From: Oculina patagonica
Taxonomy: Eukaryota
Reading direction: 5' to 3'
Assembly (NCBI RefSeq): GCF_052425735.1
Contig: NC_135770.1
Location: forward strand, 12,710,001 to 12,774,000
DNA length: 64,000 bases
In this document: in pieces, positions 17,240 to 42,000 of the stretch
Position numbering within the stretch: the first letter of the stretch is position 1
Layout of the letters: every line of letters begins with the position of its first letter
Translations under genes and position numbers: made by a program
The notes under the pieces: model-generated
Seen by the model: the letters and a program-made list of their open reading frames with translations, nothing else
Databases searched by the model: none
Told to the model about the DNA's origin: nothing

Positions 17240-19404
17240 CCGTAGAATTCCGGTTATAAGCCCTGGGCTTATAGCGGAGCTCCCACGCGCCGAAGGCGCG
17301 CGAGCGGAGCATCCATGGCAGGCAAATGGTATCCTATCGAACCGAGAAATTTTGGGAGTCGCCTACGTCCGTCGTACGTACGCCCGTACGCACGGATTAG
17401 GCCTGGGGACGAGGTTGCCCGCGCGTGGCTAAAGAAAAGTAAGGAAATACAAACAGCAAATAAAGCTCGCAAGGCAAGACAAAATGTACACAAGGGGTAA
17501 AATTACAGTGATACTACAAGCAAAATATTAGAGTTTATTAACCAACTGCTCTTTTTTGTTAGTCTTTTTTCGTGTGTGAGTGTTATGTATCGAAGCCTTT
17601 ACGCCAAAAAAAACAATAGCTATGCTCTCGTTCGATCGCTACACGGTTAAATTAATTTATTGTCTCTGGTCGCATTTTTCGTAACCGTAAAACGAGAATT
17701 GACGTTATCTTCTATCGACTGGATGATGTGGACGTTTCAGTTTGATCTAAACGAAGTAATGTTATGAAAACGCGGGAAAATGTGTTGCGCGGTGTTCACT
17801 GTGTAGGCGATGACCGAGGGTATAAAAAAGAGCGAAGAGAAGAGAACTTTCTTACCGTAATATTTCTCGCACGATGTCCTCAAAAGTCACCTATATCCGT
17901 GAAATTGTAGATAAAGAAGAGGGGAGAGACCCGGAATAATGCGGATATCCTTGTCACGTAGTTTGCTATTTTTTTTCGGATGAATCTTCGGCCGTCAACA
18001 AAGAATACACATAGCAATGATCGTGTAAAAACGAAGCTAAACACTGCATGCATCAAGTCCGCTGAAGAAAGAAAGGAATCAAGGTACAACCTGTAGGCGA
18101 GGAGAAGAAATTATATTTTATAAATTAACTTTTTTCTAAGCGCAGTTTGATAGATTTTGTCGGTAAAGTTTAATCTTTCCTTAACTTAAGCAATATACTT
18201 TGCCCCTTTAAGTCGCTTTAACTGTAACTTGTAGTACATTTAGCTTACGCTTACATGTCAGTTCATTTTTTTGTTCCCCTGAGTTGGTTTTATTTGCTAT
18301 GACTAACCGATTATCTATTGCCGTAAGTTGATTTTTTTGGGCGCAATAAAGTCTTCTAATCCCTTGCCGTAGAGTTTTTTCTGATTTATTCCGACTTTCA
18401 GCCTACATTTTCTCGGCGGAAGAAACAAAGTATAAGTGACGTTTTCGAGGCTAAACGACGACAAAGCAAAAAGCCGAAAAAATTTATTTAACTAAACTTG
18501 CTCTGAAAAACATGTTTACCCCATCTCAGGCTCGAGCGCGAGGTGAAAAATAAACGACCATATTTTTAATATTCAAACATTTTTTTTTGCTTTAGTGTAG
18601 TCCACTTTACACTGAATAATTACACTGAATAGAGATGATTTAGTGTACGTTTAAATTTTTTAAATTTTCACACGGTAAAGAAATAAAAGATAAGTTTTAA
18701 ATTTGCGTACGTGACTGAGCAACCCTTTTCCGTACGCCGATGTTAAGACAAATACAGAAAGAAAAGAAGACGGGAATATCCTGCTATTTTCTATTCTTAG
18801 AAAGCAGACAATAAACTCTTAATTATTTTTAGGCCATGAGTTGTATTAAAGCAAAACGATAAGAGGATCGTAAAATTATTTACTATTCTTTAGAAAGGAG
18901 AGAATAAATTCTTAATTAATTTTTTGTCCATTAGTTGTTCTGCCTCGAGATTATGATGGATTTATATTTGTCTTGCACCTATGGGCCAGTGTATACATAA
19001 AAGCTTTGACCGCATATTTATCAAAATGAAAACATTGTAACTCCAGCAAAGATTAAATAAATTAAAGGGAAGCTCCGCTTTTAGGCTTGCCTAAATCTAT
19101 ATATTACAACTTTGTAAGGGTTTTTGGGTGGGCTTATAAGCGGAGGGGCTTATATTCGGGAGGGCTTATAAGCGGAAGGAAAAAAACGTTTCGAAACAAG
19201 CCTAGAGAGTGTTGATCGAAATACGTTTTTAAGTTAAAAACGCACAAGAAAGCAACATTTAGCCCTGTTCAGTACTGTCATCGGGTAGAGGGGGGCTTAT
19301 ATCCGGGGGGGCTTATAACCGGATGTATTTTTTTGTTTCCAGGTTGATGGGTCTATAACCGGGGGGGCTTATAAGCGGGGGGGCTTATAACCGGAATTTT
19401 ACGG
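17240..19404. mobile_element. TA-flanked Tc1/mariner-like MITE (CCGTA.AATTCCGGTTATAAGCCC termini) interrupted by an insertion
   Basis: TA|CCGTAGAATTCCGGTTATAAGCCC ... GGGCTTATAACCGGAATTTTACGG|TA; related copy at ~61191-61524. Confidence 0.75.
17272..19104 (+). mobile_element. Non-autonomous Helentron/Helitron2-like element
   Basis: Asymmetric subterminal IRs AGCGGAGCTCCC (5') and GGGAAGCTCCGCT (19067-19079), followed by hairpin TTTAGGC-TT-GCCTAAA (19080-19095); 5' CGCGCC-GAA-GGCGCG hairpin; no clear TSD. Confidence 0.6.
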
Positions 19405-20818
19405 TATGCCAACTCCATTATTTCGAAACCCTGCTCTGTCGAACAATTTTTCTTTTTCCTTTGGGAGGTCGAGATAGCGCGGTCCTACTGTAGTTATAAG
19501 AGAATCCTGATGAATTGCTATTCTCCGACGAGGAAATTGACAAACGTCTGGGGAATGAAATGTGATGCGTTCCAAATATTTAATAATTGTAGCTTTGAAG
19601 GTAATATGAAAAAATTCTAGATAACGTTTAATAATATATTTTCTGGCAGGTAGATTAGGATTTAGCTCGTGAACATGCTCACTCAGTAGGGTATAGGACG
19701 AGAACAAAAAAAAAATCGCCTCGCCTCCCTGATATTTTTTCCCCTGTACGCCACTGGGAGAGCCTGCTCGCACTCTATATAAATCTACGCGCACACGCAA
19801 CCGGCTGTGCCTAAAATGTATTCAAATCGTACAGTTTTTCCTTTTCAGAGATTGTATTTTTATAGCGTTTATAAAATCAGAGTTTTATAAGATGAATCAC
19901 CATGTAAAAAGTGAAATTAGTTAAAAGAGAATCCTCAATGATTGCCAGTCCTCTCTGATGAGGAAAGTGATTGGTGAAGGGAATGAGATGTATTCCACAT
20001 TTTATCTTCTTTGAAAAATAAAACCGCTGAAAGCCTTGCTAGACGGTAAACTCAAATGTTTTTTTTTTGGCTTCTGATAGCCAATGATTCTCAATACCAG
20101 ATTAGACATACGTTTTGGAAGAAAACCTCGCTAAACAAGCTAATCAGAACAGTTTTATCATGTGGTCTTTTCATGATAATAATCACATGCAGACCCCAGT
20201 TGTTCAAAGAATGGATAACTCTATGCAACGGATAAATCACTATCCAGTGGTTAGCGTGGTTTGTTTTGTTAACCCTTTTCGCTGGATAGCGCTATCCTTT
20301 CGTTGAATAACCGGGCTCGGTTATGTAACCAGTCGATAGTTCATAGACGGCGGGGAAAAGTTTCTCTCACAGAAAAAAAAAAAAAAAAAAAAAACCAAAA
20401 AAAAGATCTGTAGAAATGTCTTACGTGTTCATCTGACAGACATGTCTTGTTGGACCTTGTTGGGCGTTGGACATCTCTCCTTGGATCCCGAAAGCGCCTG
20501 GCGCGGTCTGACATCCGAACAGGAACTATCATACCGATTGCGTAGCCCCAGGCCGGAGACCGGGCAGTGTCTAATTAGTTGTTTCTGAAGTTCTTGTAAA
20601 GAAACATCATTTATTTCTGTATAGCTTTGTCGTCGGTGAGAACTTTTTCGGCTCCGAATCTGACGACGACTCAGGTTCTCTTAGGCTGCAAGCCAGTTTT
20701 CACTCTTGTGTAAGTTAGTCGGACAAACTTGTGTCAATTTCATGTTTATCTCGGCAGTGAAAACTGTTAAAGCATCGCTGGTTTTGTATCAACAAAACTG
20801 TTTAGCCATGTTCACAGT

Positions 20819-23800
20819 TTACTGGTAGACATGAATACAATGTTTATTTAAATCACATACCAGGACGTGACCGTTGTTTGTAACTGCGACCGACATGGGA
20901 TGTTCCATTCCTTCGTTAACAGAGTTAACAAACTTTCCATCTAGTGTGAACACTTGTAGTCTGGTGTTATGACTGTCGCAGACAACCAAATGGTTGTTGA
21001 ACTTGTCGATTGCCACTCCTCTGGGATAACACAGCTGCCCACAGCCAACGTTATACAGAAACTCGCCTTCCTCATTGAACACTCTTATGCGATGGATTTC
21101 ACCATAGGACACAAAGAACATGCCCTGGTGATGAACAGCGGACCATGGGGACTCGGCGCAGTCTGGATCACTAAAGGACTGCAGCAATTCTGTACCGTCA
21201 GGGGAGAGGACCTTGACTGATTTGTCGCCTCGATCGCACACGATCATGTGACCATCATTTGTGATGGAAACTCTCCATGGGTCAATAAGAAGCTCACCGG
21301 TGTGTTTAATAAACTGACCATGTTCAGTAAATACGGACATTCTGTATGCCTTTGGAACCTCTCTATGAAGGACTATGACGTCATCAGATGGTGTAAATGC
21401 CACTGACATCGGCTTGCCTATTCTCTCGGCACCAGTTCCCTTGTCTCCTATCGTTCTTATGTATTTCCATTCAGGATCAAACAGCTGGACTCGCTTGTTT
21501 TTACAATCTGCTATGGCAATGTTCCCAGATTTTTCACTCACTGCAATGCTTCGCGGCTTGTCAAATTCTTCTCGGCCTTTCCCACGTGATCCAAATGAAT
21601 AAAGGGGTTTGAACTCGTGTGGAGTGACCAGGACACCCCAGGGACTACCGGTCAGCGGCTTTCCATTAACCTCGACTGCTATGTCATGTAGACCAACACT
21701 GTTTGGCTTGTACCTCACCGTGTAGGTGCCATCTCTGCAATCTTCAACATTCAGTTTCTCATCTTTGCCAGCTGGGGAGAAGATTTTCACGGTTACTTGG
21801 TCGTGATCATAAAACAGATTTCCTTGTGAATCTCGTGTCGTGACTGTAAAATAAGCTTCTGCGCCCAATTCCGCTTCTTCTAAACCTTTTCCTTCGGCCA
21901 CCGATTGTGAAGGGTCGGTGTGAACAGCCACAAGCTGACCAGGTACCAAGCGTCTTATATCATTCACAATCTCTTTTCTTGCAAGATAATTGACACGCCG
22001 TGGTTTAAAGATCGTTATTTCCTGAGTTTTTAAAAGTTCTTCACAACGACCAAAGACAGTCTGCTCTGCTTGCAGAATCTCAGAGCATATTCCTTTTTGC
22101 ACGATAGCCTCGCCATATTCAACGGACATTCTCAGTTCAGAAGCGAACGACTGAAACTCTTCCAGTTTAGCCGTATGACCTCTCTGTTGCGCTTCATTAA
22201 TTTGAGCTAACTCTGTTTTTATGGCCATTTCATGTTCTCTCAAGACTTGAATAAGTTCTTCTACAGTTTCTGTCAGCTTCGTAAGCGCAGAAGAAATTTG
22301 CTCTTGGCTTCTCTTCATCAGTTCAGTTTGTTTCTCTATCTTTGTTTCAACAAGGCCAATTTTTGTCTTGACTTTTTCAAACACTTGCGACATTTGCACT
22401 TTTCGCTCTTCTGCAGCTTGTTGGATTTCTATCTTGTCATGACCATCATGACTTGTCTGACCACACTTGAGGCATATGCAAGCTTTGCATTCTTCACAAT
22501 AATATTCCACTGTTTCATTCTCGTGATATTTCTCTTTACATGTGACAGGTCTGTGCGTCGTCTCCCTTTGTGTCGACCATTTCCCTTAAAAACAAAGGTA
22601 TACAATAAATAATACTTATTAAGATTCATTCTCGCCCCCAAAGCCGCCTATCATATACTCCCTCTTACCCGGCAGGGCCAGTGCACGAGGAATAGGTGGT
22701 CTGGGGACGCATGATGTGATTGGCTAGACTTTAGCAAAAGGAGTTTAAAATCTAGCTGATCAAATCAATTTCTTTTTAATCCCTTTGTAATGTTTTGCCG
22801 GCTAAGACGGGGATGCAGCTCTAAAAACGAAAATGGTGAAGATTCAGATACGTTATTAGGTCCTCGTCCTCAAAGGCCGCAACGCTCTTGGTCAGCACCA
22901 AGATTTGTTGCTGGTTCCATTTTTAATCTTCGCTTGTAACCAGTGGACAGGTGCATGTTTTTTAAAGCTTGGCTTGTATAACCAATTGGGCAGGCTTGTA
23001 ATGTTTCGTTCTTATCTTGGCTGGTATAACCGGTTTGACAGGCACCACAATGGAAATGTGGTGGGGGCTGTGAAGTTCAACAATGGAATTGCGATGGTGC
23101 TGGTGGTGGAGAAATAGATTGCGCAATAATTTAACCGCTACTGTGACAAAAAACGAATTCTTACAAACCGGATATATAAGCCAAGATAAAAAGAAAACAT
23201 AAGAAACTTATCCAACTGGATATAAGATAATTAGATTCCATAGCATTTTATTCATGAGTCTATGACGTCATCGGCAATGACGTATTCCTGTCCACGCTAA
23301 TGAGATTGCTGCCCAAAAACCCGGCCTAAAATATTCCTACTATACTACTGAGGTAGGATCGAAATTCAGTTCAAATATTGTTCACTTTTCCGTGCATAAC
23401 GAGAGGAAGTTCATTGAAGCAAAGAATGATCCAAAACTGAACTATTTTTAACCACTCTTGGGAAAAACGCCAACTAACAGTAGTGTGACACATAAAGCCC
23501 CATGCAAACTAAAAGGTCACAAGCAGCCCCAAGTTTGACTGACAAAAGGAAAGTTACTAGTAGCCTTCAAGTTAGCCTCCCGACATGTGAAACTCGGTAA
23601 GAGGTAGTGAAAACAGTTGTTTTTAAAAGAATTTTTCAGAGAATGGTGGGATGTATTTTTGCAGCCCAACTAACCGAACGCCTGGAAAAGGCTACTGGAA
23701 GAGGCTGATTGCCGCGAGCCACGTGTCTAGACAGAGGCTTTTTAAAAGGATTTTGAGGGAACTGAAAGCCTTTGGGGAGATCTGATTTCGCAGCAGGATT

Positions 23801-24656
23801 CGAATCACAGTATGTACCACTAAAGATAACTTAGATTTCTTTTAGGAGAGAGGTGACTCTCAATGGACCACCGACTTCTCCACAAAAGCCAATCTCATTC
23901 TCTCGGGCTTTTCTCGTGGAAGGGAAAAGCCCTGGGAATGAGGTAGCACACAAACTAACCTTCAAAAGTAATTTCCTTTTTAATGGTAAGTTGCAAGTCA
24001 TCGAGCTTTTTCATGACATGTTTGATGCCGCTTCCAATTTCACTAAGTTGATCTTTAACATTGTCCTCATCCTTCTTCCACTGAGTGAGAAGTTCTTTGT
24101 AGTGATCTTCAAGTTCAGGGTCCATGCACTCACTCTTCAGATGTTCTATAGCTGTTTTGTAATTAGCCCCTCCCAGTCTTACCAGAGTATTCTGGATGTC
24201 CTGCCAGTAGCAATTGAACGTTGAGTCGTCCACCGAAGCGTGCTCGGCATGAGCGTACACGGTGTTTCTAAAGTACTTAACACGAGCGATATCCGCTTCC
24301 CGACTGGTGTCTGCTAGGGCAGGGAGGTCGTCCCAGCCAGTTATTGGCGCTGTAAAGCCACATATGTTTCTTAACAAAACCATCAAAAGAGTAATGTCAA
24401 ATTTTGTTGAAGACACTGAAGTTGACATGGCAGGAAAAAGCTTTCCCCATTGTGTTGCATTGATGATTTTCCTTGCCCTGAGTGATTGCAACGTGCTTTT
24501 ATTTCCCGCCAAAACTGTGTGAAGATTTGCGGGTGTGTGGATGGTATCAAAAGTGTCTTTCAGGGCCTGGGTTCCAACATCAACCAACAGACGACACAAG
24601 CGAGCGTAGTTTGTTGTCTCCCTGGTGGAAGAAGTTGTTGATGATGCACAAGCCAT
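20819..24656 (-). CDS. Chimeric DZIP3-type HEPN + B-box + coiled-coil + filamin + NHL-repeat protein (~820 aa, RING-less TRIM-NHL)
   Basis: Exon 24656-23960 (NYARLCRLL, FDITLLMVLLRN, RNTVYAH; donor G|GTTAGT, phase 1) joins exon 22584-20819 (acceptor TTTTAAG|GG; B-box CKEKYHE..YYCEECKACICLKC..H..H; filamin DGTYTVRY..GSP; NHL repeats). Confidence 0.75.
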
Positions 24657-24814
24657 GGGAAGTTTCTGTCGTTTAATATTGGTATTAACTGTATTAATTT
24701 ACGTTTTCAGCGAGAGCTCTATGGGAGGGGCCTAGGGAAGAAAAGTCCGATCCTATCTCCCCCCTCTCCACTTTGATCGCGCTTGAATCCGTCACTGATA
24801 TCAGAGATTATTAA

Positions 24815-24976
24815 AAGAACTATCCACGGTATACTACAATTCTTGAGTTTTGATTGGTTTACAGGCCATAGTATATGAGCTCATATACCATGAGCCACAA
24901 ATATGGTACATGCACGCGTCAGCGAGAACAGCCGGGAAGCTCAACTATCAAAATTCTATGGGTGTTTTTAATAAAA

Positions 24977-25010
<34 letters not shown>

Positions 25011-25590
25011 AGTTATAGCCAACTCACATCCAACGCGCGCTAATGGAATAATTGTTAATTATAGTTCGCCCCAAATATTCTCTGATTCTGGTTGGTTTAA
25101 ATTGATCACGTGACGCGATAATGTTCATCCGTGGAGATAATCATTCAGGGTGCCCGTCTGAGAAAAATATCTGGATGGATAGTACTCGTCCGTGAATTTT
25201 TTTTGTAAAGAAGCGAGCCTAAGGAGAAAAAACACTGAATTCACTGCGTCGAGTAGATGTCTTGTCTGGTTTAGTTTCGTTTGTTACATTTCGGTTTTCA
25301 AGTGTTTCATCCTAAAACGTAAAAAGAATTTAAGATGCTTATTTTTGAATGGGTGTGTGGAAGAAAATTTAGTGGTGAGCATTAAAGGTAATAGAGCCGC
25401 GTTTCTGACTCGGAACTATCGGTCCGATAGTTGCCCCTTGGAAATTTGATGTTCTTAAAACTACATGTAGCATATAAGCCCTCAAAGCTTTGCTTCTCGG
25501 GCTGGTATTTGTTTTAAGAACATCAAATTTCCGCGGGACAACTATCAGCCGATGGTTCCTCGACAAAACCACCCTATTGTTTAATTATTA
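24815..25590. repeat. Interspersed repeats with terminal palindromes (possibly non-autonomous Crypton-type)
   Basis: Palindromes ACAATTATTCCA...TGGAATAATTGT (24973-25060) and GGAAATTTGATGTTCTTAAAAC...GTTTTAAGAACATCAAATTTCC (25440-25532). Similar architecture at 40780-41540 and 55335-57460. Family assignment is uncertain. Confidence 0.45.
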
Positions 25591-29327: not shown

Positions 29328-31382
29328 TTGTTTAAATAATGGAAATGGAACGCATAAATTGAAATTGTTGAGAACCTGTTGTTTGTGAAAAATCAAAGGT
29401 TTTTTCAATCACGTGTACAAACAGTAGCAAAAAAGAACTCATCTAAGTGCAAGTAATTGACGCGCGAATGGCGTAGGTGTCCAATAACAAGAATTCAATT
29501 ACAATTTGTAACTGGACAGGTGTAATTGGACACCCACGTGATCGCCCACCGCAGAACGAATCAAAGTCGAGAATTTTGTTATAGGCACGATTACGTCTTG
29601 AACTGTTACATTATCTACGGCGGTCCAATTACCTTAGAAGTTCTACAACTCAGAATAACTGACTCAGAGCCATTGCTTTACCTTCCGTTTATTGACTGGT
29701 AAACTTTGTACAATTAGAAATTAAATAAACTCTGTGGAGCTCAAAGCTTAAGTAAACATTCTAGATAAACATTCAACAAAACATAACGTCTACAGTTGAA
29801 TTTTTGTAAAATTACATTTGTACATGTATTTGTATAATGGACATAAAACTAAAACTAATATAATTTGAAAAAACCCAATTAGATTTCGAGAAGGGGATTT
29901 TCGATGTCGCACAGTATTTGCGTGAAACGCGTTTATTACCGGGAACATATTACGTAGTTTAGCGTCACTTGCTGACCAGAGCACGTTAGTAACAACAACA
30001 ATAAAATGCAATATATCATTAAATGCAAAAAATGCATTAAAAAACTTACAACAGATAAAATAAAAAAGCTATATATAATATTAGGTAAAGGAGGTTACTG
30101 TAATACAGATATTTTTTTTTCGTTACTTATTATGGAATTACTTATTCCTATTGGAATCCACTATACTTTATCTTGCTTTTAAAGCTCTCGATGTAAATTG
30201 CCCATAACAGATCATGTGATATTCTCTTGAAAATTCTTCCTTACCAATCTAAAAATTGTTCATTCATTTCCACGTGAATACGTTGGAATTTGAAAGAAAC
30301 CTCAAGGGTAACATCACCTGGTCTGAATGAGGCAATAAACAAAAGAAGCTAAAGAGGTCTTTAGTCCAAATACTGACCAATATTAACACAGAGAAACTGG
30401 TCTATGTCTGTGTACTAACACAGGAAGTTTTAGAACCTTTCCTGATGATCAAGTCATTTCTTACTGTTAGATAACAATTATAGTAATATATGTTTTTTTA
30501 CATGGGTTTTCATGTTGAATTAGCGCCCCTATTCATAAAGCAGCCTGCCGCCATTAAGCGCCTTCTATTGAGCTTCAGATTCTTGATTTGCAAGTGACGT
30601 CATTTCCGCCCTGTTGATGGTCAAAAGATTTCTACTTACAATCGAACTTATCCTTACAGACACTCTACAACACGGCCACTTTCCTATTATGGACAGTTTA
30701 CCTGGTCCGACAGAGACAAGAACTCATAGAAAACTCTCCCTCTGTAATACGGACACCTCATAAAACAGACAATGACTTGTCCTATTGATGTCCGTATAAG
30801 AGAGGTTTGGTTGTAGCTTCCAACATGGCCACCACACCATTGTCATCAAATCCTTCCTTTCCTTACCTCAAATTAATTTGCAAACTACTAAAGCAGTACT
30901 TTTGTTATTTTTTACTGGTATATTACAAATCATCATGGTAAGTTTGGAGACTAACTCGAAAACCTAGCGGTTCATTTAGCCTCCAGACCCATGAATAATT
31001 AGTAAATAATAATTGTTTTATCACATAAACTTTTACCCAATATTCTAGTTCTTTATATTTTTCTCCAATATATTTTTATTTCTGGCTTAAACAATTAGAG
31101 ATAATTACAATGAGAAAGACGTAACGTTCATCATGACACCAGTGTGAGTGGGAGCGCGAGTGCCGTTGGGGACTCAGATTTTTTCATGTCCCACGCTCGT
31201 GACATGACGAACATTACATCTTTCTTATCTCATTACCGAGCTTAAAATTTTGTCATCTTTCTGTATTTGTCAGATTATTACCACAAACAAAACAACAGAA
31301 GATTGCAATATTAAAGGTTATTTAGCGTCGCAGCCTCAAAGAAAAATTGGTAATTAACGGTATTGTCTACCTTGTTGTGACT

Positions 31383-34300
31383 TCAAGATTCATACACTTG
31401 ATGAAATTGAGTAATTTTTTGTCTGCATACTGGACAGATTTTTGTGCTTTGATGTAATTCTTTGGCACATGTCATACAGACACCCAAATGACCGCATGGA
31501 ATCAGAACACTGTTACGCGGATTGTCCATACATATGATACATTCCTTTTGTTGTTCTGCGGACGTAAAAAGCAGTACAATCACTGATTAGAAAAGCCTGG
31601 TGTAAAGGAAGACTCCTTTGCAATAAGACAAAAAAAACATGGTAACAAGAATAGTTGGCACTACCTTACATAAGAAACTTGATTGGCACTACCTTACATA
31701 AAAAAATGCGATTCAGAGCTCTCGCATGAAAAAAATGTTACATGAAGAGCGAGTCATTGAAAGGTTGTGAGCTACTTAGTCCAAAATGTCAGGCGGAATC
31801 GTTGCCATTGCGAACTATTGCAAATAAACTGCTTGCAAACGTGTGAGTTTGGTACACTCTGCTGAAAGTAATTTAGGTGTCGAATTATGTTTAAGTTGAA
31901 AATGAGCTTCTGTGTGGACTATCGGAAGCTTAATGCAGAAATTTTTGCCGTGTCAAATCGCACAAGGTAGCTTAGACATGACATTACTGCAGTAGTGATG
32001 TCCCACTTAAATCCGGCATCAAGACTTAAACTGACAAAACAAACACCGAACTCCAGACGAATCCTAACTGAAAATTCGCAGTGGCAACATAAAATAAACA
32101 TTGCCAAGACAACAGAAAAGTGTGTTAGATTGAAATTTCTACAAGGATGATCAAACACTGAAAATCAGGGTATGCATGGTTAATTTTCATTATGTAGGCA
32201 TCAATGATCGTCATGAAGGAATAGGAAAGTCCTTAGTAACTAGCATGATGTGCTGTCACCAATTCCCAAATAGTCAAATGATGATGCTAATCGTACCCTC
32301 CTTAGTAACCTGCATGCTGCTTTAGCCAGATTAATGATGATTTTTTCCGCAACACACTTGCCTTTAATAAAAAGTTGACCTAATTTATACAATTTATACA
32401 ACACTTTTGTACAAAAACGAATTTAGAATTGACATTGCTGCACCCACCTTGAGGCTGTTGTGCTGTTTTTGGTGGGTCACTGGTGGGTGGTGGTTGTTGC
32501 TGTGCCGTCCTTGTTAGATCACCAGAGGGTTGCGGTTGCTGTTGTGTTAGACTTTGGCTTCTAGTTTCCGGTGGTTTACTATATACTGGTGGAGAGCTTC
32601 CAAAAAGGGTACACAAAATACGAAGAAAAGATGTAATGTCAGATGTTTTCTGAAAAGACAAACGCAACGTCTTATTATTTTTCTCAGATAATACAAGTGC
32701 CACATACTTGTCCAATCAGAAGAAAAACCAAAACCAATCAGTGTGACTCACTCGCACACTTTTTCCCGTGCTTAACGCTGGCTACATGTATTTGCTTTCG
32801 AGTTTTGATTGGTTCACGGGACTGCCTAATGTGATTAGCCAGAGAGATTACCTAATGGTTTTGGTTTTATGCGATGAATTAATAATTTCTCGACTAATAT
32901 TACTTATAATTAAGAACAGTCATTTTTTCCACAACATTCAAGACACAGGATATTAAATTATTTCCTTTACATACATTATTCCATTTATGAAGGTAAGGAT
33001 GATACACTCTGCCATTTGTGTCGACAAATTCTGACTCCTTGATTGCCATTGAGCTTGTTGGCCTGACATACACCAGAGGTGGAACCTCAGGATGGTTCTC
33101 TTGTAACCATACAACTACTGGAATGTTGTATATTACACCTGCAATGAAGTTCTGATCTCAACATAAATGCTCCAAAGATACATTTATTTTTATTTATGAG
33201 GTTTTGCCTTTACGGTTGCAAGAATGTGCTTAAGCTATCCTATGGAAATGACTTTTGGTTTTGAGTAATTGGAAAGGTTGGAGTAGTAAGTACATAGTAG
33301 CAAGGGTAAAATAAGTGGGGGGCACGCGAGCGCCGGCCTAAGAAATCAATGCTTATATATATAATATATATTAAGACATTGCGATTCCACTGTACAGGTG
33401 TTTGGCTTGTTAGTTTTGGAAGAACTTAAATTTTAGATTATGTGCAGCAGATCAAATCAATAAAAAGAATAGATACAGACAAATAGTAGAAAAAAACCTC
33501 TATCCTTACCTCTGAAATTAACTGGGATTGTCCCTTCCAAGGTAAATAACTCTTTTTGTATCCCATTATTATATGCTGTAATGAAAATGGCATGCAAATT
33601 ATTGTAACATTAATTTGCACACTGTTTAACTTACAAAATATATTAATAAAGTGAAGAAATTATTCAACATGACACAAGCGTGGGACAAAGAAAAAATCTG
33701 AGTCCCCGACGGGAATCGAACCCATGGCCTCCCAGATACAGGTTGGGCGCTCTAACCAACTGAGCTACGAGAGACTCGTTATGAGCTGGGCCATTTACTA
33801 GGTTAATATGTGACACGTGTCCTGCATACTGCTAGGATCAGCAATGTCGAAATCATCAAATGTGTAGTAAATAATAAAGATGGTAAATTTCAAGCTCGGT
33901 GAAAAATAGTGAAGAAATTATTCAACATGACACGAGCAGATGGGAGGCCATGGGTTTGATTCCCGTTGGGGACTTATATTAGAGTTTTTCTTTGTCCCAT
34001 GCTCGAGTCATGTTGAATAATTTCTTCACTATTTATCACCGAGGTTGAAATTTACCATCTTTATTATTTACTACACATTTGATGATTTCGACATTGCTGA
34101 TCCTAGCAGTATGCAGGACGCGTGTCACATATCAAACTAGTAAATGGCCCAGCTCACAAAGAGTCTCTCGTAGCTCAGTTGGTTAGAGCGCCCAACAGGT
34201 ATCTGGGAGGTTATGGGTTTGATTCCCATTCTTTGTCCCACGCTCGTGTCATGTTGAATAATTTCTTCAATATTTATCACCGAGCTTGAAATTTACCATC

Positions 34301-35332
34301 TTTATTATTTACTATATTAATAAACCGATAGAAGTAAATACAAGTTTAGTATATTATTCAGGATCATGTACTTTTGAGTGAGTTTTCCAAGGGGAATTTT
34401 TAACAATCTTTGCATTTGAATCTCATATGGAATGCAGTTCCTAACCAAAACAACTTATTATAATAAGACTATGACATAAATTATGTTATAAAGGAAAAAA
34501 ATTACAAACAGCTAGATTATAACTTACTAAATTTTTGTAACTCAGGCCTTAAGCCTGGGAAATACTTTAACACCTGGTCAACTTCCTGAACACATGAGTT
34601 TGCTTTTTTCTAGAAATTGAACAAGAAAAAATGTTTCTTTATTAGTCAAGTCTTCTTTGCTATAAAAGGAGTCAGGCCTACCAATGAGTTGTTTTTGTTA
34701 TTGTTGTTGTCATTATAGTTATAATGTATTCTAGCTAGTATAGTATGCCATGTTTGAGATAAATATTTAATTTCATTAAATTTCATTTACAGTGTACTTA
34801 AATTCATATAATTAAGTTGTAATGAGCTTAAAAGATTATTCAATAAAATTTGTATAGTAATGAGCAGCAGAGAATTAAGGCCCTTTTTTGGTAGACATAA
34901 TTATTAATGATAAACAATTGATTTAACCAGACTGATTCCAAAAGCGACGACTTTTGTTACTTCCAAATGGGCAGCCTTTTTCGATCACCATACTATTGAA
35001 GGGCAGCAACTTTCAGGCAGCTAAAACATGTACCATATGTGTTCAAACCAATCCATCTTAATAATAAAAAATAATAAATTATAAAATGTTTTCAATATTA
35101 ACATACAGAGCTGACAAGGGATAAGATATTTTTGGAAATTTAATTATCTGCAACAATACTTTATCCTTTTCAGCTCTGCAAATATTTTTTGAAATTTTAC
35201 ATAACATTAACACAGGGTAAATACTCCTAGGTTTGTGACATTTGTACCTTTGCCGTTCTGTGTTAAGTTCGGTCTTCCGACCTTATTTGCTTCTGACTTC
35301 TTTTTGAGGGTACTGTTTTTATTTGGAGGCAT
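31383..35332 (-). CDS. TSG101-like UEV domain + Pro/Gln linker + C-terminal RING-HC protein (~245 aa)
   Basis: Exons 35332-35282, 34609-34528, 33575-33510, 33138-32975, 32649-32448, 31555-31383, all GT-AG with consistent phases. [67 protein letters not shown] is a UEV; ECIICMD..PCGHLGVCMTC..CPVCRQ is a RING. Confidence 0.85.
33648..34313. repeat. Second locus of the tRNA-derived tandem/inverted repeat, in an intron of the UEV-RING gene
   Basis: Same unit as 26628-27212 (period 258 bp), ~1.1 copies on - joined to ~1.4 copies on +; another fragment at ~31105-31270. Confidence 0.8.
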
Positions 35333-35952
35333 TATGTATTGAATAGAGCCGTAAGATTGTGGCCAAGGAAGTGTGTAGAGGTCATTAGTCCGCGCTGCGT
35401 GGCTTCCGTTTGTAGAGTTGAATGACACCTCTAAATCTGTACTCTGCCACTTGTTGCGCTAGTTCAGTTTGTTTTGGCTCAATGCTTTTTGCAAGATATG
35501 CTTTAGGCTCTCAAGATGTTTGCCCTGGAAGGACAAGATATGAATGTTCCGTGAAAATGTAAACTACTTGCATTTTATTGACGCCGGGCCCGGCATTTTA
35601 ATCAATACTGTTGCAAGATGTATCGTCTTATCACGGATTATCTTGGTCCGGCTTCGCCAGAGACTGTTTCAGCTTTATGAAAAAGCTGAAAGTTGGTTTC
35701 AGAGAGACACTCTGTGTTGTAAAGGCAAGGTTTCTTGCATTATTTTGATCGAGCGCTCTGTCTTTTTAGCTCGATGTTTAGGATTTTTTTACCTCCCTTG
35801 TTCGTTGTGTTGCGTTGGCACCACATGATTCAAATATAGATTTGAAATCTTTCAAGCCCAAGTCTGTTGACTATTTTGCGTTTTGTATATGCCAGTATAT
35901 GGTTCAGTTCGAAAGCTTTGGACTAGGATTGAGTTGTTGAGATTTATTATTA

Positions 35953-36151
35953 AGATTAATATTAATCCGATTAATATTAATCTTACATAAGATTAATATT
36001 AATCCTAATGGATTAAGGCACGGCTCAAACCTCAGTAATAGATTATAATAATCTATTACCGGATTATAATAATCTATTACTGGATTATAATAATCTATTA
36101 CTGGATTGTAATAATCATTAGGATTAATATTAATCCGATTAATATTAATCC
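35953..36151. repeat. Array of short palindromes and 21-bp tandem repeats
   Basis: GATTAATATTAATC five times; GGATTATAATAATCTATTAC(C/T) about four times in tandem. Confidence 0.8.
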
Positions 36152-39074
36152 GAGTTGTCTGTTTTTATAACAAAACCCTTTAAAGGAAAAATGTTTCGTG
36201 TTTTATGGACTAGTTCCACAAAATGACCTCAATTCCCTGATACATACTGGAACCAACCGGGGGGGGGGGGGGGGGGGGGGAGGGGATTCAAGCAAGAGAT
36301 TATTGTTTTGTAATGGCTTATGTTTCTGGAGCTTCATTGGCTTAAACCAGTAATGAACTTTGCTGTGGGTTACAGAGAGATGTCTTATTTCCAATAGCAA
36401 CAATGATTGTGTTATATCTTGGCCAACCTTGAAACACTCTATGGAATTCTTTTCTATGGGCAGTAGAGCATTCCCCAAGGGTGTTTGCGTGCTTAGGTTT
36501 TTCAGTTTCAGGCCAAATGAATTAAGGCACAGTCACAGTTTATTCCCGGATTTTAATCCCGAAAGATTTGTTTGATGGTTCCAGGGCAATTATCGTGATT
36601 ACAACACAAAAATACCCGGCCACTTTTGACGACGAATGCGTTGTACGAAGCAATTATTTCAAGACAGCAGAACTCTGGTAAAGCTTTTTGATTTTAGTGT
36701 TATCAGTAAAAATATGTTCTCCCTTGAGCTAAAAAGTCTTTATCTAAGTGTCTAAATTCCCTGAGAAATTTTGAAGTTTTATATTTTATGAACATTTTTT
36801 TGTTTCTTTGCATGTCGTCGTCGGCTTATACCCAAACTAAACTCTTTTGTATACACTCGACGATGTACACTTCATCACAAGGCATTTACTTCCGCTCGGC
36901 ATACGTAACAAACTATACCGATGTTTGAATATAAACTTCAATAAGATATTAGGCATCTAGGTCACACTTTATGCTGTGAAAAATACTTGCCTTAGTTTTC
37001 TTGATCAATGCAGTCCGCCAAGAAACGGCCATTTGTCAAAAACAAGCCAATAAACTCGATAAGCTTACACCTTCGTTCATTCCTTGATTTCTTGTAAAAA
37101 GTAAAAAGTAGTATAGTACCCAGTCTTACGCGCCCGAATTGAATGCCCGAGGAGGGTGAGGAGTGTAGGGACTCTGACCACCGTTTGCACTGAAATTGGA
37201 GCAAGCCATGCCAGTATAATTTTCACCAAAAAAGCTCTGCTGGTTCATAATTAGAAGATTTTCGCACTTTTTGAAGCATTAAAGTCAATAACAATTTAGA
37301 TTCTTGCCTTTTAATGCATCAGAATAATTGCAAATTCAGTAGATCTGGGACCTAACAATATGCCGGAACATGCTCCTGTACCGGAAGTATTTTTACTTGT
37401 CCGCAGTTATTCACTACGAACTATTTACCTGTTTTAGGAAATTAACGATGCGCATATGCATGTTATTAATGCGAATTTCAAAAATTCGCGTTATTTTTAT
37501 GCACCTTTATTTACGTCATTGTATATATATTTGGGGGTTAATTTGAATCACACTATTTTACAACATCGTTATTTTAAGGCATTTATATTTCCAGCAAAGT
37601 TCGGGAAAGTTTCATCAGTAATCTTCCTCTCCATCAGAGGTCTTCAGAGTCAGTCGACACATCGTCATTCAATATTGATTTTAAAAAATGTTTTTAGTTT
37701 CGTAACGTTTGTTATCTCCAAGGGTAAATGGAGAAACCGCTCAATTCTTTTACTTTATAGACATCGCATTCCTGTCTTCCCATTTTCAGGTATTTCTGTT
37801 GCTGGTCGTTTTTGTTTTGTCTTGTCAAAAGCAAAGGAAGCTATGGAAATCATCACGCATAAAGCACCAAATTCGCGTTATAAATCAAATGTATGTGAAC
37901 GTACACCCACGGAAAAATCGCTCTAGATTAAATGCATGTAAATAGAACTTTTCGAAAATTCGCGTTAATTTTATAACGGCGATTTTGTTTGCGTTGTTTT
38001 AACAACGCAAAAGGATGTTCTTAAAATCAAAATTCATGTTCTTATAAATTTCGGTTTCAACGTTCTTATTAAAAAAAGGTTCGTTAAGTATGTGAAAGAG
38101 TGTACCCAGTCTGTACGCTTTGTTCTCCATTTTCTCAGTCTGACTGTCTTTCCACTGGGTACGCAGTCTGTCTTTCCCAAGCTGAGATTAAGAGGTGAAG
38201 CATTTTTATTTTGTTCTCCATCGTATCAAATAACCCACATTCAAATGGTCACATTCTCATCAGTTTTCTGAAAAGCCATATCATGCTAAGAACATTCAGT
38301 TTTGATTCAACCACTGCTGTAAAAGACGTTCTTATAGAAAAGTGTAGATCTGTTACAGTAGCGAGATGTAAACTGACTCGTTTTCCACTTCATGTTACCT
38401 TCCCGGTCTCCGTACAGATCATAGTAAATAACCAAATTTACGAACTAATTTGCCATTTCAGCTAAGTTTTAAAAGGTCAGTCCGTGAATTAATCAGGCTC
38501 AAATGAGGCCAGACTGTAGTTCGACTGTTTTTCCAACGACAGACTCGGTCTAAAGAGAATTCAGGATTTCTTTTTTTGTTATTTAAGAAATTCCAGCGGT
38601 GGGTACCAGATTCTTCGGTCTAGAAGTTGCATGTCTTGTGTAAATCATCATATGCTAGAAGCGAGTCAAAAACTTGAACTCATACATTTTTATTAACTGC
38701 TCTCGCACGCTTTTAGTCTTCCAGAAAACCACATAAAAACAAACTTAAACAGTGTGAAAATATTTTACTTCATTTTTATTTCAAATAAAAACTTTAAAAA
38801 GTCGATTTAAACCAGCATACAGTTAGTGAAGGCATTAAAAAAATGTCTTGGCAAGCTGTGACCACACAAACAGAGGATGGTATGCCTGTGGTGTCAACGT
38901 ACCGATCTACTGCATGGCACTTCTGAGTTCAAACCAAAGTCCATGCGATCCCATTTAATTTTACTTTGTTTTTCTGTTCAATTCCAATGGTTACATTGTT
39001 AAAGTTGCACTGAACTTGATGACAGAGATCCATATATTTAAATAGTGCGTGAGATTTGTCCACTGATCCCTCGT

Positions 39075-42000
39075 TTATGGCTGAAAGACACGAATAACCC
39101 CGGTAAAAGTCTGCCGGCATACTGGGCAAATGCCTTGATCAGCTTTTAGAGTGTCAGCACATGCTGAACAAACGCACAAATGATGGCATGGGACCAACAG
39201 ACTGTCTCTAGCACTGTCCATGCACACCACGCACTCATTCTGAGGACCTGCTGACACAAGAGGAAAAAAGGACAGTTGAATTAAACTTTACACTGAAGTA
39301 AACTGGTATGTACATGTATCATGAATGTAATCTATTTTATGACAGATATGGCACGTGTATTATGAATCCACTAACCACACCCTTTTACCAAAATGTTTCG
39401 TTAATTACCATTAAAATGACTGAAACACAAACCATCCTAGTTCGCATGAACACTGTGGTCCATTTAAACGAAACGATATCAAGTACCACAACAGATTTTT
39501 CGTATAACATAAAAGATTTCTCTGGCTTCGACTACACATTTGCACTACATTTTCGACAGTTAACTTCTATCGTTTGACATTTGAAGACTTCAGCTAGAAA
39601 AGTCAAAATTACTGGGCAGTTATTGTCTTGATACAAGTATACTTCAAAATTCTCAGAACTCACATTGAGAGAATGCATAAAAAAATCAGTAAGACGAATC
39701 AGAACATTGAGGGTATCCGGTCACATCGTTCCAAGGTTACTTCGTTCCAAGTCACATCGTTCCAACTTTCGGTCAGATCGTTCCAAAAAAAAAGTCACTT
39801 CGTTCCAACTAAAAGTTACTTCGATCGTTCCAAAATAAAACATCTAATAAAGAAATAAGATTAATTAATAAAGGGTATTACACGCAACAAAAGCAGTCGC
39901 ATATAAAACCACGCGCAGTGTGTGAAAACGCTATATAGTTTACGGTCGATTTTGTTAAGTTAGTTTTACGTTTATTTTAACCATAACAGGATTCAAATAC
40001 TTTTTCTAAGGCTCAAGGCAACCAATTTGATTTATTCTTTCTCATTTTAAGCCACGCGAAGTGCGAAAAAAAGAGCCGCGCTACCGCGAGCCAGAAAAAA
40101 TCTGATGTGGGAGAAGAGGGAGCCAAAGCGACTATCTTCACAGGGTTGTTGGAAGTGAAAAAGGGCGGGATCGAATTTTCCACGAGCACTATAGTTGGAA
40201 GAACTTTAGTTGGAACGAAGGACTTTTTTTGGAACGATCTGACCGAAAGTGGAAGATTGTCTGGAAGAAGTAACCTTGGAACGATGTGACCGCAATTCAC
40301 ATTGAGCCATACCTTCAGCTGCTGCAGATTCTGGATGTTGCTCTGTTGGTACATGTCCTGCACTACCATGCTGATGGCCAAGGTATGAACCAACCCCTCC
40401 ATAGCCGAGGCTTGGCAGCTGGCTATGAGGTGCATGACCATCCTGTAACAGAGTTCTTAGCCTGTCTCTGTGAGCTGGGATTAGAAAATGCAAATAAACT
40501 AAGAAACTAAGATCAAAGCTGGTAATTACACCCATATGCATATTTTCGTAAATGGAAAGAAAGTTGTGGAAAGAATGTCGTTTGTCACCATCTCATTCTA
40601 TGATTGCGCTGTTGGTAATTTTTGGGTCATGTCTCTTGTTGGAATTTACCCTGAAAGAGTCCCAGTAATGATCAGTGTAAACAATTCGTTTCCATGCTTC
40701 ACTTCAAACTTCCACTTTTCAAATGAAGTCCAATGAATGTCCAGTACTCAAAGACTTCACCCAATATATATATATATATGTTATATGTTATGCCGGGAGG
40801 TCCGCATTGGGAAAAACTGTACCCTCGGTCTTGAGTACGGCCCAAGATCTGCGGCCTCGGGCCGTGTTTAAGACCGAGGGTACAGATTTTCCCAATACGG
40901 ACCGATCTAGGCCGGCATATAATGTTTTTATTTTTTTCCTACTTTAATTTGTTTGGAAAAGAAACCGATAAAAAATGTGTCGCAAAATCTTTGTGTACAC
41001 GCGGATTTAATTTCAAAGTTGAGTCCGACTCGATCGACAAGCAAGAGTGAAGATTTCTGTTTGCCATCTAATTCCGAAGAAAATACCTTTGCTTAAAATG
41101 AATCGTACTCAAAAAAGGTTCGGCATATTTAATTTACACTGTACAGAGAATCAAGAAAAGCAAATGAAGTCATAAAAATGGCACAAATATGCCACAAAAC
41201 TTAACACATGAAATCGATTTTGGCTTTCCGAACAATTCCCGATATTAAAATGTTTTGAAAGTCTTGAAAGAAACTTTGCTCGCAGGGTGTTAATCTTATT
41301 TCTCTGACTCCAAAATACTCTTTGACTGAAAAGCAGTTTTACAAGCTATTCACACTCGTATTTAAAACAAATTTAACTCGTTAGACCGAAGCTACAATTA
41401 CCTACAAAATGATTTCGCGCCGTGAGCGGTCCGTACGTGGGATCCGGATGGGAAAATCCGGACCGCTGGAGCAAGTGCAATAAGCCAATCAGGTTCAAGG
41501 ATTAAGGATTCCGGACCGCTCAGATGCTTGAGAAAAAAAATAATTTATTTCATTTGCATGCAATAGAGATGTGAGAATTTGCATAGAATGACTTGCAGGT
41601 TTTCCAGTATTTGTATACATAATTATCAATGTGGATGGTATGCACACACCATTACTTCACCTAATATTTTTCATCACTCGTTTTTCTGGACCAAGGTGAG
41701 TTGTTTCGGTATTCTCAGGGAGTTGAAAGGGGAGGGGGAGGTGAAGAGAAAATATATTAAAAAAAATAATGGTGTTGACTGTACAACTGAAAAATTAAAT
41801 TTAGTAAATCATTGTACATACTAGGTCATTTTTTTTGACTATTGAATTAAGTTTAGTGAAAAAACTGTCAATTTTCATGTGCTAGAGTGACATGTCAAGC
41901 AAGACAAATAACACTCTTTACTGTTAGCAGTTCTTTCAGTCTGATACTAACGGCAGATTGTAAGATTCTAGCTCCGTGAATTATATTTTATTCCCAGCAA

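Follow-up and report, generated by a model that had tools for sequence, protein, structure and literature searches.

A TSG101-type UEV domain joined to a RING finger: a predicted ubiquitin ligase of stony corals

The window analyzed here, a stretch of 64,000 nucleotides from the genome of the coral Oculina patagonica (contig NC_135770.1), carries a minus-strand gene (span 31383-37032, six exons) whose 242-aa product begins with a TSG101-type UEV domain and ends in a RING-HC finger, the two being separated by ~40 aa of disordered linker. We consider it probable (about 0.6) that this locus encodes a RING-type ubiquitin ligase targeted by its TSG101-type UEV and that it originated in the ancestor of stony corals, the function being a prediction. 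The most likely role would be that of an E3 ligase for P(T/S)AP-bearing or ubiquitinated proteins, operating outside ESCRT-I.

Gene structure and expression

The spliced model is identical to RefSeq protein XP_078352472.1 of O. patagonica when the first exon is placed at 37032-36991. The features of the gene and its surroundings are as follows.

36991..37032, minus strand: coding exon 1, 42 nt, MAVSWRTALIKKTK; exact match to the N terminus of database proteins P0004 and P0164
34528..34609, minus strand: exon 2, 82 nt; UEV N-terminal helix
33510..33575, minus strand: exon 3, 66 nt; UEV beta-hairpin ("tongue"), Pfam UEV
32975..33138, minus strand: exon 4, 164 nt; UEV core with most P(T/S)AP-groove residues, Pfam UEV (5e-20)
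32448..32649, minus strand: exon 5, 202 nt; last UEV helix and groove wall, then the linker
32649-32566, minus strand: UEV end within exon 5 (PPVYSKP; aa 119-146); last helix and groove wall
32565-32448, minus strand: Q/P-rich disordered linker within exon 5 (pLDDT <50; dN/dS 0.93)
31383..31555, minus strand: exon 6, 173 nt, terminal; whole RING-HC, tail and stop, Pfam zf-C3HC4_3 (1e-18)
35248..35332, minus strand: 85-nt segment taken as exon 1 in an earlier note; not part of the UEV-RING gene
39081..39250, minus strand: terminal RING exon of the upstream neighbor, a dehydrogenase-like RING gene; tblastn 50% identity

Intron 1 is of the GC-AG type (donor gcaagt), and exon 1 is homologous to the first exon of the Pocillopora ortholog, while exons 2 to 6 all have AG/GT borders. 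Exon 6 is preceded by a phase-1 intron, its first bases being codon positions 2 and 3; the stop codon (TGA) lies at 31385-31383, and the 3' untranslated region reaches at least position 31000.

Spliced contigs from three runs belonging to three studies, presumed to be RNA, contained the joints 34528|33575, 33510|33138, 32975|32649, and 32448|31555, exactly at the predicted GT-AG borders. The last of these, for which the earlier note had sought transcript support, connects the UEV to the RING and was present in all three runs. The contigs are likely to derive from RNA because they skip introns exactly at GT-AG borders and no intronless copy of the gene exists in the Oculina genome. Their joints cover exons 2 to 6, with 88 to 96 unplaced nucleotides 5' of exon 2, and a shallow run of raw polyA reads had no reads on the UEV-RING exons. 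Eleven coding variants were found among the RNA contigs, eight of them synonymous, and all three nonsynonymous ones fell in the linker. The UEV-RING gene is real, spliced, and expressed.

The outline drawn in the earlier note, with six exons and internal ones of 82, 66, and 164 nt, was confirmed except for its first exon and hence its outer coordinate, 35332. The segment 35332-35248 would put exon 2 out of frame, no contig links the two, and it sits inside an intronic repeat (35163-36248). RNA depth over this repeat was ~1000 in the 35163-35343 bin and 41 to 269 elsewhere, compared to 36 to 116 over the UEV-RING exons, and the depth of the repeat holding the segment was roughly 7 to 28 times that of the gene. 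Two versions using other donors in the same open reading frame (51 and 108 nt) were dropped after the true exon 1 had been found. The GenBank model KAL9953028.1 (P0004) was also rejected; in that model, 31481-31397 is spliced out of the terminal exon and a further exon is placed at 30609-30568, whereas an RNA contig runs unbroken over 31000-31555.

Domain architecture and structure

Pfam searches with the 242-aa product matched UEV (PF05743; 3.9e-40, 136.9 bits with a cut-off of 27) and zf-C3HC4_3 (PF13920; 2.3e-17, 63 bits) and found neither the stalk coiled coil nor the Vps23_core/steadiness box (PF09454), in agreement with the architecture first read from the DNA. Likewise, the C-terminal half of the coral TSG101 had no phmmer match in the UEV-RING protein. 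TSG101/Vps23 has a Pro-rich region, the stalk, and the Vps23_core/steadiness box, whereas the coral protein lacks all of them and has a RING instead. The stalk coiled coil and the Vps23_core/steadiness box bind VPS28, VPS37, and MVB12, and since both are missing, the coral protein is predicted to be unable to build ESCRT-I. The linker had been described as containing a duplicated TAQQ element; two short TAQQ motifs are indeed present, but they lie in a low-complexity stretch and are not conserved among orthologs.

The best sequence match of the UEV in the PDB was the human TSG101 UEV (1e-36), to which it is 40 to 42% identical. In the AF2 model, pLDDT was >90 across the UEV and 68 to 83 across the RING, with the linker disordered (<50); a single-sequence AlphaFold model (pLDDT of 44) was discarded. 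Foldseek aligned the UEV with TSG101 UEV structures, including complexes with PTAP, PSAP, and ubiquitin, at TM scores of 0.88 to 0.96 and rmsd of 1.4 to 2.5 Å, while matches to true E2s were weaker. The UEV has the E2-like fold without an active-site cysteine, and the residue aligned to human Tyr110, which marks the vestigial active site, is Tyr109. With TSG101/Vps23, the coral protein thus shares the UEV fold (TM of about 0.9), the P(T/S)AP-groove residues and, in the case of the coral TSG101, the intron positions.

The groove residues of human TSG101 have been listed previously (PMC11670305). In human numbering, T58, V61, Y68, N69, I70, P71, T92, M95, P139, and V141 are identical in Oculina, and the changes are Y63 to F and F142 to Y; over the set Y63, Y68, I70, P139, F142, S143, T58, N69, P71, T92, M95, and V141, 10 of 12 are identical. 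The groove is therefore not degenerate; a degenerate groove would, according to the earlier note, have refuted its reading. Seven positions (T58, Y68, I70, P71, T92, M95, and V141) were invariant in 10 coral orthologs, N69 and P139 were each altered in one Acropora sequence, S143 varied (S/A/T), and Y63 was F or I in some. The coral canonical TSG101 carries the same Y63 and S143 changes. Judged by these alignments, the UEV-RING protein and the canonical TSG101 of the coral have retained the residues lining the P(T/S)AP groove to about the same degree.

The picture is different for the ubiquitin surface. In UEVs of the TSG101 type, ubiquitin is contacted by the hairpin and by the surroundings of the vestigial active site (PMC9944984). 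The ubiquitin-contacting hairpin (human V43-S48) is present in Oculina, with the lip residue F88 changed to Y. Among coral orthologs, however, the position of N45 is N, D, E, P, or S and that of D46 is N, D, H, or S, and ubiquitin reading may be weakened by this variation. Of the functional patches in the coral family, the P(T/S)AP groove shows the strongest conservation and the hairpin the weakest.

The RING finger

The eight zinc ligands (C191, C194, C206, H208, C212, C215, C226, and C229) follow the cross-brace spacing and were invariant in 14 family members. The nearest PDB sequences were MDM2 (2e-9) and cIAP2 (8e-9), with MEX3C, MGRN1, and XIAP also found. The residue after the first RING Cys is aliphatic (I, V, L, or K) in most family members, all of them have Pro227, and at least 90% have Arg230 after the last Cys; these three positions are sequence hints of E2 binding. 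With all of its zinc ligands in place, the domain is classified from its sequence as a RING-HC (C3HC4) of the PF13920 type and is a predicted E3 ligase. The IAP/MDM2 class provides the best RING matches, and the coral CPVCRQ.I motif and the aromatic Tyr240, three residues from the C terminus, resemble the tails of that class, which mediate dimerization and activation of E2~Ub. The coral protein differs in having no BIR or p53-binding domains.

Origin of the two halves

A separate canonical TSG101, whose existence the earlier note had left to be confirmed, was found on another chromosome (C2) and is the only PF09454 locus in the Oculina genome. The intron positions and phases of the UEV exons are identical in both genes, and the 66- and 164-nt exons, which had been proposed to equal those of TSG101, do have the same sizes in the coral's own canonical gene. 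Exon 2 (82 nt) corresponds to 85 nt in TSG101, with the same phases. In the tree, the coral UEV-RING clade adjoins coral TSG101. The identical intron positions indicate that the UEV half arose by partial duplication of TSG101 at the DNA level, as had been suggested. Two extra UEV units on C1 have no RING, caspase, or TSG101 C-terminal exons within about 12 kb.

For the RING exon, the best genome-wide match to exon 6 was the terminal RING exon of the upstream neighbor listed above (55.5 bits versus 40.7 for the next). Its acceptor has the same phase and lies five residues before the first Cys, and its RING shares with exon 6 a long C6-C7 loop. A tree of the RING (57 columns) gave no resolution, and the adjacency of the two genes was not seen in Pocillopora and Stylophora, where a PIK3R4-like kinase gene is located upstream. 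From these comparisons, we regard copying of the RING exon from the neighboring dehydrogenase-RING gene as plausible.

The proposed history would then be that, in the stony-coral ancestor, a DNA-level duplication copied the first five TSG101 exons, and the Q/P-rich linker exon of the duplicate acquired a terminal RING exon, perhaps from the dehydrogenase-RING gene that still adjoins it in Oculina.

Distribution and selection

Orthologs were found across stony corals (Acropora, Montipora, Stylophora, and Pocillopora), with an intact open reading frame in both main lineages and downstream synteny retained with Pocillopora. The UEV had a dN/dS of 0.28 to 0.34, the RING one of 0.14, and the linker one of 0.93, which points to purifying selection on both domains and a nearly neutral linker. 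The value of ~0.3 for the UEV is not very low. None of the outcomes that the earlier note had named as refutations was observed: the UEV-RING joint is seen in transcripts, the locus is expressed and constrained, and the groove is intact.

Lamprey, amphioxus, the acorn worm Saccoglossus, and the brittle star Amphiura have UEV-RING fusions of their own, of the same design, in which a PF13920 RING at the C terminus is preceded by one TSG101-type UEV or by two; the brittle-star version carries added UBA domains. The C6-C7 loop is shorter than in the coral in lamprey, Saccoglossus, and Amphiura and equally long in amphioxus. A single ancient animal UEV-RING family was rejected, as these UEVs fall outside the coral clade in the tree and one common clade is rejected (AU test, P = 0.0004). 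They are not orthologs of the coral gene, and the trees indicate more than one origin of the design among animals, which argues that it is useful rather than accidental. A UEV-caspase model is also present in Ptychodera.

Searches of the literature on UEV-RING fusions or coral TSG101-like genes returned nothing relevant, and none of the noncoral models has been characterized. The statement in the earlier note that no UEV-RING protein had been characterized agrees with these searches, but the architecture itself, which seems to have escaped study so far, is already represented in RefSeq/UniProt by entries from many corals, lampreys, amphioxus, and Saccoglossus that bear names such as TSG101-like, ELC-like, or "uncharacterized protein."

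Possible function

The TSG101 UEV is the gateway into the ESCRT pathway for cargo and for many enveloped viruses, and all the biology of TSG101-type UEVs known to us belongs to the ESCRT-I context or to the poorly understood UEVLD. In the coral protein, the UEV would bind other proteins by their P(T/S)AP motifs and possibly by ubiquitin; the RING would recruit E2~ubiquitin through Pro227, Arg230, and the conserved hydrophobic residue that follows its first Cys; and the flexible linker would allow the RING to ubiquitinate whatever the UEV holds. Because it would not assemble into ESCRT-I, the protein could share its ligands with TSG101 and work either alongside it or in opposition to it, candidates being PSAP proteins of the ESCRT-0/HRS type, ALIX or arrestin-like adaptors, and Gag-like proteins. 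A UEV reader coupled to a ligase outside ESCRT-I predicts tagging, rather than sorting, of P(T/S)AP-bearing proteins and would have a natural parallel to the N-terminal TSG101 fragments that were engineered as dominant negatives.

The same axis is used in the opposite direction by two ligases with RINGs of the same C-terminal type (PF13920), LRSAM1 (TAL) and MGRN1. The former is reportedly a P(T/S)AP-bearing RING ligase acting on TSG101. MGRN1 binds and ubiquitinates TSG101 (PMC4670916). In both, the P(T/S)AP motif docks on the UEV of TSG101, whereas the coral protein bears the UEV itself, and its 242-aa sequence contains neither a PTAP nor a PSAP motif. Another parallel is vertebrate UEVLD, likewise a partial TSG101 duplicate with a UEV and a foreign C-terminal domain, which has been listed as a product of domain shuffling (PMC11788884). 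Its partner is a lactate/malate-dehydrogenase-like domain; the coral protein has a RING and no Ldh_1_N or Ldh_1_C match.

As a special case of the main reading, which is the one proposed in the earlier note, the protein might be an innate-immune decoy of TSG101. It would capture the P(T/S)AP late domains of enveloped viruses or of Gag proteins from retroelements and mark these by ubiquitination to be destroyed, sparing ESCRT-I. Retention of the groove with loss of the ESCRT-I assembly parts would suit such a role, as would the existence of further UEV paralogs in corals and a dN/dS for the UEV above that of the RING. UEV-effector fusions have moreover recurred independently (lamprey, amphioxus, Saccoglossus, and Amphiura, and with a caspase in Ptychodera), and repeated fusion of one domain to effectors is typical of immune domain shuffling. 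However, cellular PSAP/PTAP proteins such as HRS are equally good targets, we know of no viral P(T/S)AP ligand in corals, and the gene is a single, syntenic copy, whereas most immune families of corals are expanded. We thus hold this narrower role to be unlikely. Similarly speculative is its extension to other marine animals, in which UEVs would have been repeatedly and independently wired to a RING or, in Ptychodera, a caspase as sensors or traps of P(T/S)AP late domains, an innate defense of the entry into ESCRT against budding viruses and Gag-bearing retroelements through ubiquitination or cell death. The independent UEV-RING origins provide several separate test systems.

A different possibility, to which we give a similarly low probability, is that the UEV does not choose substrates but binds acceptor or donor ubiquitin beside the RING, making chain formation more processive or linkage specific, loosely like Mms2/Uev1a with Ubc13 or the ubiquitin-binding domains of other E3s. 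TSG101-type UEVs are not known to partner the active site of an E2 in the manner of Mms2. They do bind ubiquitin (PMC9944984), and the UBA domains added in the brittle-star version would fit a ubiquitin-directed role. The predicted complex of the UEV with the coral's own ubiquitin scored 0.60 (best control, 0.00), which lends weak support here and to ubiquitin binding in the main reading, given that passes at or below 0.60 comprised only 5 of 78 solved complexes and all 4 of the mismatches that passed. Runs agreed in at least 95% of contacts, with a partner pLDDT of at least 87; nevertheless, a similar complex has already been solved, so that a pass at 0.60 may reflect memory and is not counted as evidence of binding. 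The conservation pattern described above, in which the ubiquitin hairpin is the least and the P(T/S)AP groove the best conserved functional patch, argues against this role. Finally, a locus without function of its own, either a partial duplicate in decay or an artifact of chimeric gene modeling, as the mis-spliced RING of KAL9953028.1 and the neutrally evolving linker might suggest, is very improbable in view of the spliced transcripts in three runs, the intact open reading frame across both main stony-coral lineages, the dN/dS well below 1 in the UEV and RING, and the invariant zinc ligands.

The finding also corrects misleading "TSG101-like" annotation in coral, lamprey, and amphioxus genomes; for the coral protein, this RefSeq name masks the lack of the ESCRT-I assembly regions and the presence of a RING.

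Structure and transcription of the UEV-RING gene

The UEV-RING gene lies on the minus strand, spans 31383-37032 and has six coding exons that encode a product of 242 aa.

Coding exons of the UEV-RING gene
Exon 1: 37032-36991 (-), encodes the N-terminus MAVSWRTALIKKTK; GC donor after it
Exon 2: 34609-34528 (-), 82 nt, AG/GT borders
Exon 3: 33575-33510 (-), 66 nt, AG/GT borders; Pfam UEV in the piecewise scan
Exon 4: 33138-32975 (-), 164 nt, AG/GT borders; Pfam UEV, 5e-20
Exon 5: 32649-32448 (-), 202 nt, AG/GT borders
Exon 6 (RING): 31555-31383 (-), 173 nt, TGA end; Pfam zf-C3HC4_3, 1e-18

The spliced model that includes exon 37032-36991 equals the RefSeq protein XP_078352472.1 letter for letter. 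A homologous first exon occupies the same relative place in the Pocillopora orthologue, and in a transcript from a related coral this N-terminus is likewise joined to exon 2. Intron 1 is a GC-AG intron (donor AAG/gcaagt at 36985-36991). The earlier note had given the internal UEV exons their correct sizes and had placed exon 1 at 35332-35248 (85 nt), which has to be abandoned: its 85 nt, spliced to an exon 2 that begins in phase 0, would shift the entire UEV out of frame, and no contig over 31000-36400 joins it to exon 2. The open reading frame in question is part of a transcribed repeat in intron 1 (35163-36248) with many differences among contigs and an RNA depth that reaches ~1000 in one bin (35163-35343) and is 41-269 over the rest of the repeat, versus 36-116 on the exons.

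Read evidence over 31000-36400 came from three contig sets (X1, X2 and X3, with three organism labels from three studies) and one shallow polyA raw-read run, which had no reads on the exons and was uninformative. The joints 31555/32448, 32649/32975, 33136(+2)/33508(+2) and 33575/34528 were found in one contig of each of the three runs, and all four skips have CT..AC ends on the plus strand and hence GT..AG ends in the direction of the gene. Since the contigs skip the introns exactly, UEV and RING exons are carried by a single spliced molecule; the earlier note had made its case depend above all on this joining, and joint 31555/32448 was seen in 3/3 runs. The contig runs are presumed to be RNA by guess only, and a DNA origin is unlikely because the introns are removed exactly and a genome-wide search found no intronless UEV copy in Oculina. 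Contigs of X1 and X2 extend 88-96 nt further 5' of exon 2, with sequence placed nowhere inside 31000-36400, and the X3 contig only ~30 nt.

The 164-nt exon, used as query in an exhaustive protein search, gave a 100% identical match to a 233-aa O. patagonica protein, KAL9953028.1, which clusters with XP_078352472.1 (annotated "tumor susceptibility gene 101 protein-like"). In the KAL9953028.1 model, 31481-31397 is excised from within the RING exon and a further exon is placed at 30609-30568, so that the RING is lost. This splicing is contradicted by the X1 contig, which runs unbroken from 31555 to 31000, so that the RING exon has no internal splicing and the 3' UTR measures at least 380 nt. Both XP_078352472.1 and the RNA contigs back the unspliced exon.

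The introns hold further repeats. Intron 2 has several tRNA-derived SINE-like copies in both orientations (33660-34290, with an ARAGORN call of tRNA-Thr(tgt) at 33700-33775), which RNA contigs cover to a depth of thousands and with numerous joints in inverted orientation. A short repeat in intron 4 (32730-32820) reaches a contig depth of up to ~100,000 in one run, with many loose ends, and probably represents all or part of a highly abundant mobile element.

Domain architecture, binding surfaces and selection

Across the whole protein, Pfam identified a UEV (residues 21-140, 136.9 bits) and a zf-C3HC4_3 RING (residues 188-235, 63 bits), with no other substantial domain among the 242 aa. Among PDB sequences, residues 11-144 match the human TSG101 UEV (1e-36), and the RING is closest to those of MDM2, cIAP2/1, MEX3C, CGRRF1, MGRN1, XIAP and MUL1. 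AlphaFold, run on an alignment of 32 rows, gave a model with pLDDT of >90 for residues 20-140, <50 for ~151-187 and 68-83 for the RING. By Foldseek, the UEV superimposed on human TSG101 UEV structures, including the PTAP, HRS-PSAP and ubiquitin complexes, with TM scores of 0.88-0.96 and rmsd of 1.4-2.5 Å. A phmmer search with the C-terminal half of coral TSG101 detected neither stalk nor steadiness box in the UEV-RING proteins, which agrees with the absence of both from the first reading of the gene.

We compared the P(T/S)AP groove with the residues described for human TSG101 (PMC11670305; human residue = coral residue + 1 in the alignment). T58, V61, Y68, N69, I70, P71, T92, S94, M95, K98, P139, V141, S143 and P145 are unchanged in Oculina, and the substitutions are Y63 to Phe, F142 to Tyr and R144 to Lys. 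In all ten coral orthologues T58, Y68, I70, P71, T92, M95 and V141 are invariant and position 142 is Tyr or Phe; one Acropora sequence differs at each of N69 and P139. Positions 63 (F/I) and 143 (S/A/T) take the same states in the coral's canonical TSG101. With its residues largely kept across the ten orthologues, the groove is not degenerate, a decay that the earlier note had named as telling against its reading.

The ubiquitin-contacting hairpin of the TSG101 UEV lies in the V43-S48 region (PMC9944984), of which positions N45 and D46 are variable in the coral orthologues, unlike the groove. When the UEV was modeled in complex with ubiquitin from the coral itself, support was weak (score 0.60 versus 0.00 for the best control). 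Only 5/78 solved complexes, and all four passing mismatches, pass at 0.60 or less. Contacts agreed at ≥95% between runs with partner pLDDT of ≥87, and the pass may reflect memorization by the model because a like complex has already been solved.

In the RING, 8/8 zinc ligands and Pro227 are kept, Arg230 follows the last Cys in ≥90% of members, and the tail closes with ...QVYES, in which the third residue from the end is aromatic. Such features are hallmarks of active, often dimeric, RINGs of the IAP/MDM2 class.

Compared with the transcript of a related coral, whose UEV is 78% identical, the gene had dN/dS values of 0.28-0.34 in the UEV, 0.14 in the RING and 0.93 in the linker. Among the 11 coding differences listed between the three RNA contigs on the window, eight were synonymous and the other three (codons 146, 153 and 161) all fell in the linker. 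Neutral evolution, a possibility raised in the earlier note, does not hold for the gene.

Origin of the UEV and RING exons

The Oculina genome has four UEV loci. The one on contig C2 has the genome's only Vps23_core match, and its nine exons align to full-length coral TSG101, at ~100% to Oculina's 439-aa TSG101 (P0239); a separate canonical TSG101 is therefore present, as the earlier note had expected. Its UEV exons measure 85, 66 and 164 nt, compared with 82, 66 and 164 nt in the UEV-RING gene, with the same borders and phases, and the following exon begins at the same codon in both. The equality of the last two sizes with TSG101 exons, proposed in the earlier note, holds within this coral, and the shared borders and phases favor duplication at the DNA level over retroposition as the source of the UEV half. 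The nine coral UEV-RING sequences grouped as one clade (100/88) in a maximum-likelihood tree covering 56 UEV domains, and coral TSG101 was their weakly supported sister (92/47).

Two more TSG101-type UEV units stand in tandem on the same strand, ~6.3 kb apart, at C1:27411800-27422400, with no RING, caspase or TSG101 C-terminal exons within ~12 kb. As Porites lobata has a 375-aa UEV-UEV protein (P0229), the pair may be one UEV-UEV gene.

Genome-wide, the RING exon is most closely related to the last exon, likewise a RING, of the upstream dehydrogenase-like neighbor (39242-39081; 55.5 bits, ~50% identity; next-best match, 40.7 bits). The neighbor's exon has the same intron phase as exon 6, five residues ahead of the first Cys, and the two RINGs share a long loop between ligands six and seven. 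Acquisition by local shuffling from this gene may be suggested, as an unproven origin: the RING tree lacked resolution, the two RINGs diverge about as much as Oculina and Acropora orthologues do, and Pocillopora and Stylophora have a PIK3R4-like kinase gene upstream instead. Downstream, a Mito_carr gene and the next gene are conserved (window 9946-16851; 19042-25465 in the Pocillopora verrucosa stretch), which confirms orthology with the Pocillopora gene. The distance from the Mito_carr gene to the UEV-RING gene is ~14 kb longer in Oculina than in P. verrucosa and holds a TRIM-NHL/HEPN gene (20819-24656).

Distribution and recurrent fusion

Both main lineages of stony corals have full-length UEV-RING proteins (213-248 aa): Acropora digitifera, A. 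millepora, A. palmata, Montipora capricornis, M. foliosa, Stylophora pistillata, three Pocillopora species, O. patagonica and several further transcript assemblies. Databases name them "TSG101-like", "protein ELC-like" or "RING-type domain-containing protein". In Nematostella the profile search found canonical TSG101 only, and the family range is a lower bound in which absence is not proven. Fusions outside corals were found as gene models only.

UEV fusions outside corals (gene models only)
Lampreys: UEV + RING, 281-283 aa
Amphioxus: UEV-UEV-RING
Saccoglossus: UEV-UEV-RING
Brittle star Amphiura filiformis, XP_072034169.1: UEV-RING + UBAP1-like UBA domains
Acorn worm Ptychodera flava, XP_070532603.1: UEV-caspase (Peptidase_C14, 8e-51)

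Their UEVs fall outside the coral clade, that of Amphiura pairing with a canonical TSG101 (99/87). The AU test rejected a single clade of all RING-bearing UEVs (p = 0.0004) and one of corals and Amphiura alone (p = 0.0015). The RINGs of lampreys, Saccoglossus and Amphiura are of a shorter-looped subtype, and amphioxus has a loop that matches the coral one in length. Given the rejection of one clade, the failure of the UEVs to group and the differing RING subtypes, the fusion is recurrent in animals.

Putative function

The stable, expressed protein combines a TSG101-like P(T/S)AP reader with an intact RING on a floppy tether and lacks any part needed to enter ESCRT-I. We consider it probable (about 0.6) that it acts as a generic E3 ligase, which would ubiquitinate proteins that display P(T/S)AP motifs, perhaps with a preference for those already ubiquitinated, in parallel to or in competition with TSG101. 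Candidate ligands would be cellular PSAP proteins such as HRS, which recruits TSG101 via PSAP (PMC2172688), or viral or retroelement Gag. An antiviral trap, a special case of the ligase reading close to the decoy first proposed, is unlikely. Similarly doubtful is a role for the UEV as an in-cis ubiquitin-binding helper, for which the predicted ubiquitin contact and the variable hairpin are both to be weighed. That the locus has no function is very improbable beside its spliced transcripts and dN/dS values.

If the protein is a ligase, it would be the mirror image of TAL/LRSAM1, a ligase that carries the motif and docks onto the TSG101 UEV. MGRN1 (PMC4670916) likewise carries the motif and docks onto the TSG101 UEV, whereas the coral ligase would carry the UEV itself.

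A full-text literature search, of incomplete coverage, yielded no publication on UEV-RING proteins or these coral genes, in line with the earlier note. Public annotation and precomputed Pfam domain lists already show the architecture, and UEV and RING are each well known; the protein would be a RING E3 whose targeting domain is unusual and well defined, and it is not categorically new. The finding is worthwhile, not extraordinary. Its worth lies in the recurrent origin and the clean history of duplication and putative exon capture, and standard peptide-binding and ubiquitination assays allow direct testing.

Large clusters of divergent ubiquitin-like repeats in long open frames, with >100 Pfam ubiquitin matches, were also seen on contig C11 (19.21-19.35 and 21.60-21.79 Mb) and on C1232, separate from the canonical polyubiquitin gene at C6:2511546-2512907.
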